DNA of 64,000 bases. It comes from Phyllobates terribilis (taxonomy: Eukaryota). The first letter of the stretch is position 1. Every line of letters begins with the position of its first letter. Position numbers and translations under genes: made by a program. Shown piece by piece: positions 54,873-55,721 of the stretch. Under the pieces are notes generated by a model that was not told where the DNA came from, did no database searches, and saw only the letters and a program-made list of their open reading frames with translations. The stretch is taken from the NCBI RefSeq assembly GCF_046119375.1, contig NW_027362765.1, positions 163,308,001 to 163,372,000 on the forward strand, written 5' to 3'.

Positions 54873-55721
54873 ATGAAGCATACCACCAGCCATGGTTATT
54901 CTTCATTTGGTGGCCATAAAGGAAATTGCCACACAGGAGGCCATTCTTCCAAAATGTTCAGCCATGTGTCTACATCTCATCATGGAGGATCGCATCAAGG
55001 AGGATCCCATGTGTCTCACCATGGAGGTTCTCATTCATCCCATCTTGGAGGTTCCCATTTCTCTCAGCATGGAGGATCACATTTGCGCCATCATGGAAGC
55101 TCTCATTTGTCCCACCACTCAGGAGGATCCCATCATGGAAGCTGTCATTCATCCCCTCACTCTGGAGGATCCCACCATGGAAGCTCTCACTTGTCCCACC
55201 AAATGGGAGGATCCCATTTAACTCATCATGGAGGATTCCATAAATCTCACCTATCATCTTCTCATATGTCCCATCTAGGAGGCTCCCATAAAATGCATCA
55301 TGGCAGCTCCCATATGTCCCATGGAGGCTCCCATCTGTCACATCATGGAGGCTCACATGGTTCAAGCATGTCCCATCATGGAAGCCACCTCAAATCTGTA
55401 AGTCACCATGGTGGATCAAGCTGTAAAGCAGTCTCATTTTCCAAGCATGCTTCTAGCAGCCATTATGGAGCCAATGGTCATTATGCAAGCTCAGGAGGTC
55501 ATGGTGGCTGGAAGAATGATGGTCTACTCAGTATTAATGAAAAACAAACTATGCAAATATTAAATGAGCGCTTATCTTCCTACTTGGACAAAGTGAGTGC
55601 TCTTGAACAGGAAAATGCCCAATTGGAGCGCAAAATCTGTGAATGGTATGCCAATAATGCCCCCAGCTCACTACCTGACTCCAGCCAGTACTTCAGGATG
55701 ATCTCTGAACTCCAGAACCAG
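54873..55721 (+). CDS. Keratin C exon 1 (His-rich repeat head + coil 1A)
   Basis: 849 nt open frame, MKHTTSH...ISELQNQ; donor gtaaag. Confidence 0.94.

Follow-up and report, generated by a model that had tools for sequence, protein, structure and literature searches.

Males of Leptobrachium express duplicated hair-keratin genes in their nuptial spines, where hoxc13, tgm2 and tyrosinase are co-expressed (Li et al. 2019, PMC6895153). In Xenopus, claws are built by Hoxc13-dependent krt34 and krt59, which are not Cys-rich (Carron et al. 2024, PMC10948813). Bombina has 13 krt34 paralogues, all with 0–3% Cys; ten of the 13 are differentially expressed in oral-disc data, and nearly all of these ten rise during cornification of the oral disc (Dias et al. 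2026, bioRxiv 10.64898/2026.09.30.755311). Dias et al. proposed that pipids lost the krt34 duplicates along with their horny mouthparts, and asked what hardens the tissue in place of cysteine (bioRxiv 10.64898/2026.09.30.755311). Such work on claws, nuptial pads and tadpole beaks (Carron 2024, Dias 2026) finds the hard-keratin homologues of amphibians not to be Cys-rich; tissue hardening is left open by it, and attention currently goes to separate Cys-rich AEDC proteins.

The word 'histidine' is absent from all three of these papers (PMC6895153, PMC10948813, bioRxiv 10.64898/2026.09.30.755311), and full-text searches of the open literature found no description of His-rich frog keratins. A His-rich branch of the frog hard keratins appears to have gone unnoticed in the current literature. 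Here we describe a member of this branch, keratin C, which lies with two paralogues (A and B) in a window of 64,000 nt from the genome of Phyllobates terribilis. The conserved His content of about 20–35% in both end domains of such keratins offers a concrete and testable candidate mechanism for hardening.

Results

Gene model of keratin C

The exons of keratin C were located with Dendrobates and Hyla proteins as guides, and each exon was checked individually (Table 1). The summed lengths of the eight exons give 1,692 nt, that is 563 codons and a stop, with consistent phases, and canonical GT-AG splice sites are found at every junction. Exon 1 is open from its ATG to its donor site, in agreement with an earlier reading made from the DNA letters only (the sequence-only reading), which had described this exon as 849 nt without stop or frameshift. 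Residues 222–283 of exon 1 correspond to profile positions 1–62 of Pfam PF00038 Filament (E 5e-15), and since the Filament match starts at residue 222, the head of keratin C is 221 aa long. With the ATG and this Pfam boundary fixed, and with heads of 100 aa in A and 108 aa in B, the same reading was also right that this head is about twice as long as the 100–108 aa of the paralogues. The remainder of the rod, including the rod-end motif, is encoded by exons 2–6.

Vertebrate type I keratin genes have internal exons of 83, 157, 162, 126 and 221 nt. The internal exons of keratin C match this pattern exactly, all with AG/GT boundaries. The tail contains about 30% His and has no tandem array. Cys occurs three times in the 221-aa head and once in the tail, at the C-terminus. 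A Pfam search with exon 1 returned Filament only. Judged by its exon structure and by the position of orthologous rods in the trees described below, keratin C is an intact type I keratin gene and a homologue of the hard keratins.

Table 1. Coordinates of keratin C and of neighbouring features in the window
Feature	Position	Strand	Remarks
Paralogue A exon 1	27358..27843	+	ATG 27358; head 100 aa, 21 His
Paralogue B exon 1	34971..35480	+	ATG 34971; head 108 aa, 14 His
Hoxc13 consensus match	54693..54700	-	about 65 bp upstream of the keratin C TATA box
TATA box TATATAAA	54765..54772	+	about 100 bp 5' of the keratin C ATG
Keratin C exon 1	54873..55721	+	849 nt; ATG at 54873, donor CAG|GTAAAG after 55721, zero stops
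Head, N-terminal segment, aa 1-35	54873..54977	+	non-repetitive
Head, His/Ser/Gly repeat array, aa 36-178	54978..55406	+	basic unit about 8 aa (24 nt)
Three 14-aa (42-nt) super-units	55088-55217	+	85-87% DNA identity
Head, pre-rod segment, aa 179-221	55407..55535	+	kept in orthologues
Rod start (coil 1A)	55536..55721	+	final 62 codons of exon 1; Pfam Filament
Keratin C exon 2	55883..55965	+	83 nt; AG/GT boundaries; 100% identical to P0188 across 30 aa
Keratin C exon 3	57676..57832	+	157 nt
Keratin C exon 4	58358..58519	+	162 nt
Keratin C exon 5	59239..59364	+	126 nt
Keratin C exon 6	59467..59687	+	221 nt; rod terminates here
Keratin C exon 7	60745..60779	+	35 nt; tail
Keratin C exon 8	61700..61758	+	His-rich tail end and stop codon

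A CATATA(A/T)A motif is common to the promoters of keratins A, B and C. The published Hoxc13 site consensus is TT(T/A)ATx(A/G)(A/G) (PMC10948813), and besides the match near the keratin C TATA box, matches also lie within about 130 bp of the ATG in promoters A and B. None of these sites is aligned across the three promoters, and the scan was no better than chance: the whole window contains 140 matches where 112 are expected, about one per 460 bp, so that a single candidate site is weak evidence for regulation by Hoxc13.

Gene A is about 95% identical to the Phyllobates terribilis protein P0034. Gene B has an unusually long gap of about 5.5 kb between rod exons (36219-41787). Inside this gap, at 37114-40475, each strand carries ORFs of about 200 aa that have no annotation, probably those of an inserted repeat element. 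Elsewhere in the window, a Tc1/mariner-type transposon remnant with Sleeping Beauty HTH and Tc3 transposase HTH lies at 12840-13436 (+), and another remnant of the same type, with a DDE_3 fragment, lies at 22156-22761 (+). Scanned against Rfam at gathering thresholds, the window as a whole matched no family.

The His-rich head and its repeat array

Ser (59 residues), His (55) and Gly (45) make up 72% of the 221-aa head, His alone accounting for 25% and Gly for 20%. There are nine aromatic and 10 Lys/Arg residues, no Glu, and a single Asp that sits within the KNDG junction. A composition dominated by His, Ser and Gly, poor in aromatics and free of acidic residues until KNDG, is thus what the sequence-only reading had described.

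Tandem Repeats Finder on exon 1 reported overlapping arrays with periods of 24, 48, 42 and 21 nt. In the autocorrelation of His along the head, lags of 8 (z 3.3) and 4 (z 2.9) stand out, and there is no signal at lag 2 (z -4.9). The short motif GGSH occurs 11 times against 0.6 in shuffled heads, and HG[GS]SH eight times against 0.3; HH pairs, with 11 against 13.4 in shuffles, show no excess over composition. The claim of a repeated octad S-H-x-S-H-H-G-G therefore needs dividing: a real array with a period of about 8 aa is supported both by Tandem Repeats Finder and by autocorrelation, but the exact octad is found just twice in the head and is an idealised consensus. ORFs of 105–131 aa also span the array in the other two forward frames and on the minus strand, as is expected for such repeats. 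Ser codons of the head belong to both families, 45 TCN and 14 AGY.

The two flanks of the array can be tentatively aligned with other keratins. Residues 1–35 align with the N-termini of the His-rich family described below and of axolotl krt34 (M-S-x-x-I-K-x-x-x-S-S-x-G-S-x-K-G), an alignment that is of low complexity and not robust. The pre-rod segment aligns, also tentatively, with ...GGKGISISKH... and GW-N-DG motifs of the His-rich family and krt34. With an assumed His pKa of 6.5, the head has a computed net charge of about +15 at pH 7.4 and of about +51 at pH 6; a jump of this size makes a pH switch plausible, short of demonstrated.

Array length in independent data

Data from run X5, which belongs to another study, gave a single contig of 2,996 nt over 54500-56100, in which exon 1 has no indel. 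This contig differs from the window by three SNPs (C>T) and a 9-nt insertion in intron 2, and the sole exonic difference, at 55460, is synonymous. Because of these differences X5 comes from another haplotype or individual, and because its array has the same length, the array is not an assembly artefact. Polymorphism of copy number, which had been suggested, was not seen between the two available haplotypes.

It could still be supposed that the long head is an error of assembly or annotation, or that keratin C is a dead copy. Contigs from two short-read runs of low coverage (X6 and X7) do break within the array and cover its edges only, and many RefSeq models of orthologues have no head and start at the Met of MQILNERL. 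Beside the independent contig of identical length, however, two Dendrobates tinctorius paralogues carry heads of exactly 221 aa, a spliced ranid mRNA holds the head in frame, and the gene has eight open exons, canonical splice sites and a TATA box. We regard an artefact or a dead copy as very improbable. The two paralogues belong to a set of at least five near-identical ones in D. tinctorius, with heads of 221, 221, 233, 237 and, in an N-truncated member, 194 aa. The ranid mRNA (L001, from an unlabelled public run) is a spliced contig of 3,027 nt from the same orthologous group, in which the His head runs into the rod without a change of frame; in this orthologue, the mature transcript hence includes the His head.

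Run X16, which is possibly RNA and of unlabelled tissue, contains a 173-nt contig of the keratin C head at a depth of 3.4; for other keratin contigs of X16, the depth lies between hundreds and tens of thousands. Contigs of X16 that hit exon 2 at 55904-55957 have depths from 240 to 25,000 and match only 30–36 nt of a conserved coding stretch, with 2–3 mismatches. The source of these deep contigs is the mRNA of other keratins with high expression, not that of keratin C.

The headless RefSeq models that begin at the internal Met of MQILNERL are P0074, P0168-P0171, P0173, P0174, P0079, P0082, P0081 and P0067. They include Hyla sarda, Bufo bufo, B. gargarizans, Leptodactylus, Dendropsophus, Ranitomeya variabilis, Pyxicephalus, Hyperolius, Mixophyes and Pseudophryne. 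It seems that annotation systematically loses the head at the low-complexity exon 1, and surveys of composition that are built on such models would miss the His head.

Conservation and length of the head among frogs

In an alignment of five species, the head of the window is collinear with those of Dendrobates tinctorius (93% identity), Engystomops (86%), Rhinoderma (86%) and Lithobates (73%). The orthologue heads span 233–269 aa, and the 221 aa of the window are the shortest of the five. Wherever the lengths differ, the difference is a gap of 2 to about 31 residues that lies inside the repeats and keeps the frame; the longest gaps measure 28–32 aa at the 14-aa super-units and 20–31 aa further downstream.

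Selection on the head was judged at the protein level, from the five orthologues and from the D. tinctorius paralogues. Residues invariant across the five orthologues comprise 40 of the 55 His, 30 of the 59 Ser and 21 of the 45 Gly, and 6 of the 27 Leu, Met, Val or Phe that occupy the hydrophobic x positions, so that no class of residue is better conserved than His. Compared with the two D. tinctorius paralogues of equal head length, the head is 89–90% identical and keeps 53–54 of its 55 His; rod 1A is 94–98% identical in the same comparison (58–61 of 62 residues).

An array of this kind might reflect neutral low-complexity drift, that is, slippage-prone DNA tolerated in a dispensable head, in which His has no specific function. 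In favour of this are the gains and losses of repeat units seen among orthologues and paralogues, the 85–87% identity of the 42-nt units, which suggests ongoing slippage or conversion, and head lengths that vary from 40 to 318 aa in the family. However, hyloid and ranoid frogs share a collinear array; 73% of the His positions are invariant but only 22% of the hydrophobic x positions; both families of Ser codons are in use; the tail, which is not tandem, is also about 25–30% His across the family; and the identity of the head to the D. tinctorius paralogues (about 90%) is near the 94–98% of rod 1A. Drift of this sort is in our judgement improbable. The aligned proteins instead establish that the length of the head shifts by gain and loss of repeat units, and that the His positions are held by what we read as purifying selection. 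The idea that selection had kept the array in frame is thereby upheld, with the in-frame gaps inside the repeats, the invariant His and the mixture of TCN and AGY codons all in its favour.

In a tree of 133 rods, the orthologous group of keratin C contains 24 rows with an SH-like support of 99 and includes Myobatrachidae, Ranoidea and Hyloidea. Complete models of this group all have heads of 221–269 aa, and long heads throughout its ranoid and hyloid members mean that the long head is old, pre-dating the ranoid–hyloid split, and not a local expansion. To describe the head as expanded is therefore misleading, as the copy in the window is among the shortest of its group. The locus is an ordinary intact member of the group with no private expansion, and its head, by all the alignments at hand, is the conserved N-terminal end domain of the group across neobatrachian frogs.

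A His-rich family within the krt34 clade

Word searches with exon 1 returned 106 proteins, mostly anuran and named 'keratin, type I cytoskeletal 19-like', many of which match across the head; the exceptions were two mammalian K16, one Xenopus keratin and a few unlabelled Logan sequences. A second word search that admitted longer proteins added 201 more, with heads of 233 aa in D. tinctorius, 263 aa in Engystomops and 266–269 aa in Lithobates, Aquarana and Rhinoderma. Word searches with the head found keratins only, nearly all anuran, and no Xenopus member of the His-rich family came up in either of the two. A feature search of the ESM Atlas with the head gave no usable match.

From these searches we define a family of at least 110 type I keratins, of which the 110 complete members come from 27 anuran genera. 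Their heads have a median length of 126.5 aa (range 40–318 aa) and a median His content of 20%, against 2.7% in the krt34/toe-pad type, and their tails contain 25% His (about 25–30%). Lineages of this family other than that of keratin C lengthened their heads independently. In a second and separate long-headed lineage, P0118 of Rhinoderma has 94 His in a head of 318 aa, and P0124 of Lithobates has 92 His in a head of 272 aa and 26 in a tail of 73 aa; with 30–34% His in its heads, this lineage is the most extreme case.

A third search, started from the nearest relatives that are not His-rich, led to Hyla cinerea toe pad keratin 1, two Xenopus proteins and proteins of axolotl and newt. P0090, tried as nearest outgroup, led to this toe-pad/krt34 clade; P0105, tried in the same role, was rejected, since it falls outside the clade and is an ordinary keratin with a Gly/Ser head. 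The His-rich family is united with the Xenopus/toe-pad clade at support 100/100. According to the supplement of Carron et al. 2024 (PMC10948813), X. tropicalis krt34 is XP_002939082, here P0302, and the axolotl_krt34 rod is P0256.

With these verified krt34 sequences included, 71 rods were analysed in IQ-TREE under LG+C20, with ultrafast bootstrap / SH-aLRT as support; K13, K15 and K19 are absent from this tree. Keratin C was represented in the trees by full-length database orthologues (P0074, P0117 and others), to which the exons of the window are 87–100% identical. Mammalian K35, Ha1, two Cys-rich sheep rods, salamander krt34, anuran toe-pad/Xenopus krt34 and the His-rich family form one clade (94/98), and K14, K16 and K42 fall outside it. 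Within the clade, the His-rich family (100/99) and the toe-pad/Xenopus krt34 clade (100/99) are each well supported, and the sister relation between the two is weak (89/54). The His-rich keratins are hence paralogues inside the amphibian krt34 clade, which is homologous to the hard keratins.

The only Bombina krt34 paralogue mapped by in situ hybridisation, XP_053554654.1, starts with MSQTRS and encodes EIELQAQ; the His-rich family has EIELQSQ and a different N-terminus. This difference, with the NCBI name '19-like', had raised the reading that the family is not krt34 at all, which was ruled out by the tree with verified krt34.

Discussion

We propose, with moderate confidence, that keratin C is a type I keratin of the krt34 clade with a conserved His-rich head, the ends of which glue filaments together in hard-cornifying epithelia of anurans. 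In this model, keratin C would pair with a type II partner of the krt59 type to form filaments in epithelia that cornify hard and are usually dark, the likeliest site being the jaw sheaths and labial teeth of tadpoles, with other horny structures as possible sites. The disordered His-rich ends would project from the filament, as end domains of other keratins do, and may act as a multivalent and switchable glue that bundles or fixes filaments, through contacts among filaments or between filament and matrix, during cornification. Such ends would fill the role that Cys-rich ends play in amniote hard keratins.

Three chemistries might serve this function, given here in a loose order of preference. 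Upon acidification, a pH-driven switch of charge could let the ends bind to acidic rods, like a built-in filaggrin. Alternatively, Zn2+ or Cu2+ could be coordinated between imidazoles, and in melanised tissue His could form adducts with quinones or melanin; reactions of these two kinds occur in the jaws of Nereis and Glycera and the beaks of squid. The HGG units in a period of eight residues recall the Cu-binding octarepeat of the prion protein, which we take as a lead only.

The site of action deserves separate consideration. His-rich paralogues may be real and yet act mainly in adults, in toe discs, tubercles, nuptial pads and the general stratum corneum, and not in the mouthparts of tadpoles. 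Hyla toe pad keratin 1 belongs to the sister clade, the hair-keratin duplicates of Leptobrachium are expressed in spines of adult males (PMC6895153), and a krt59 paralogue of Bombina is found in body tubercles of froglets, where a krt34 paralogue is just weak (bioRxiv 10.64898/2026.09.30.755311). The head contig of low depth in the possibly-RNA run of unlabelled tissue, X16, would also be compatible with an adult site. On the other side, most krt34 paralogues of Bombina rise together as the oral disc cornifies (bioRxiv 10.64898/2026.09.30.755311), and Xenopus, which has no horny tadpole mouthparts, reportedly keeps a single krt34, which is of the Gly type, and contributed no member of the His-rich family in the head searches. 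We consider a mainly adult role unlikely, and tadpole mouthparts stay the preferred site for keratin C. As XP_053554654.1 is unlike the His-rich family, the link of the latter to mouthparts runs through membership in the clade, and we infer its expression there.

A bolder version of the model is possible, and we put it forward tentatively: frogs may use His and not Cys for hard cornification, the His-rich ends of krt34 paralogues being cross-linked by Zn or Cu, or by quinones or melanin, in tadpole jaw sheaths and labial teeth, and this branch may have been lost in pipids along with horny mouthparts.

Among described proteins, krt34 of Xenopus and axolotl and Hyla cinerea toe pad keratin 1 have a similar rod, and the N-terminal and pre-rod motifs of their heads can be tentatively aligned with those of keratin C; their heads, however, are Gly/Ser-rich with 1–7% His and have no SH-x-SHHGG array. 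The published anuran krt34 paralogues (PMC6895153, PMC10948813, bioRxiv 10.64898/2026.09.30.755311) resemble keratin C in belonging to the same rod clade and in being duplicates in a tandem type I cluster. Like the family of keratin C, they are Cys-low and their duplicates are absent from Xenopus. That work scored Cys alone, and neither the His-rich branch nor the long-headed group was singled out.

The amniote hair keratins KRT31-40 share with keratin C a homologous rod and specialised ends of biased composition, with a presumed role in fixing the filaments of hard tissue. They are Cys-rich and are cross-linked to KRTAPs by disulfides. By contrast, the head of keratin C holds only 3 Cys, and of the 575 aa in P0117, a D. 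tinctorius paralogue, 7 are Cys. Filaggrin, the 'histidine-rich protein' of mammalian keratohyalin, consists of cationic, His-rich and disordered repeats and aggregates keratin filaments during cornification. It is a separate S100-fused protein that acts in trans, whereas the His module of keratin C lies in cis, and Pfam found no S100 domain in exon 1.

Horny teeth of lampreys contain KRTAP-like proteins with short repeats rich in Gly, Tyr, Cys and His (PMC12101200), and are a second case of His enrichment in horny mouthparts of vertebrates. These proteins belong to the matrix, are small and have no sequence relation to keratin C; they are not keratins.

The most similar compositions are found in invertebrate jaws. 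Nvjp-1 of Nereis contains 27% His and 36% Gly, and MTP of Glycera 40% His and 49% Gly; together with the HBPs of squid, these proteins combine modular short repeats and disorder with hard, dark feeding structures and with condensation triggered by pH or metals (PMC9999432, PMC9465683). They are secreted stand-alone proteins without homology to keratin C, and the likeness is compositional only. Keratin C has no signal peptide at its N-terminus and carries its His motif fused to a cytoskeletal rod; unlike Nvjp-1, MTP and the HBPs, its head is the end domain of an intracellular filament protein, rich in Ser and nearly free of Asp, Glu and Tyr. Should His-based cross-linking of krt34 ends hold for tadpole mouthparts, it would be a vertebrate and intracellular counterpart of the His-based sclerotisation in the jaws of Nereis and Glycera and in the beaks of squid.
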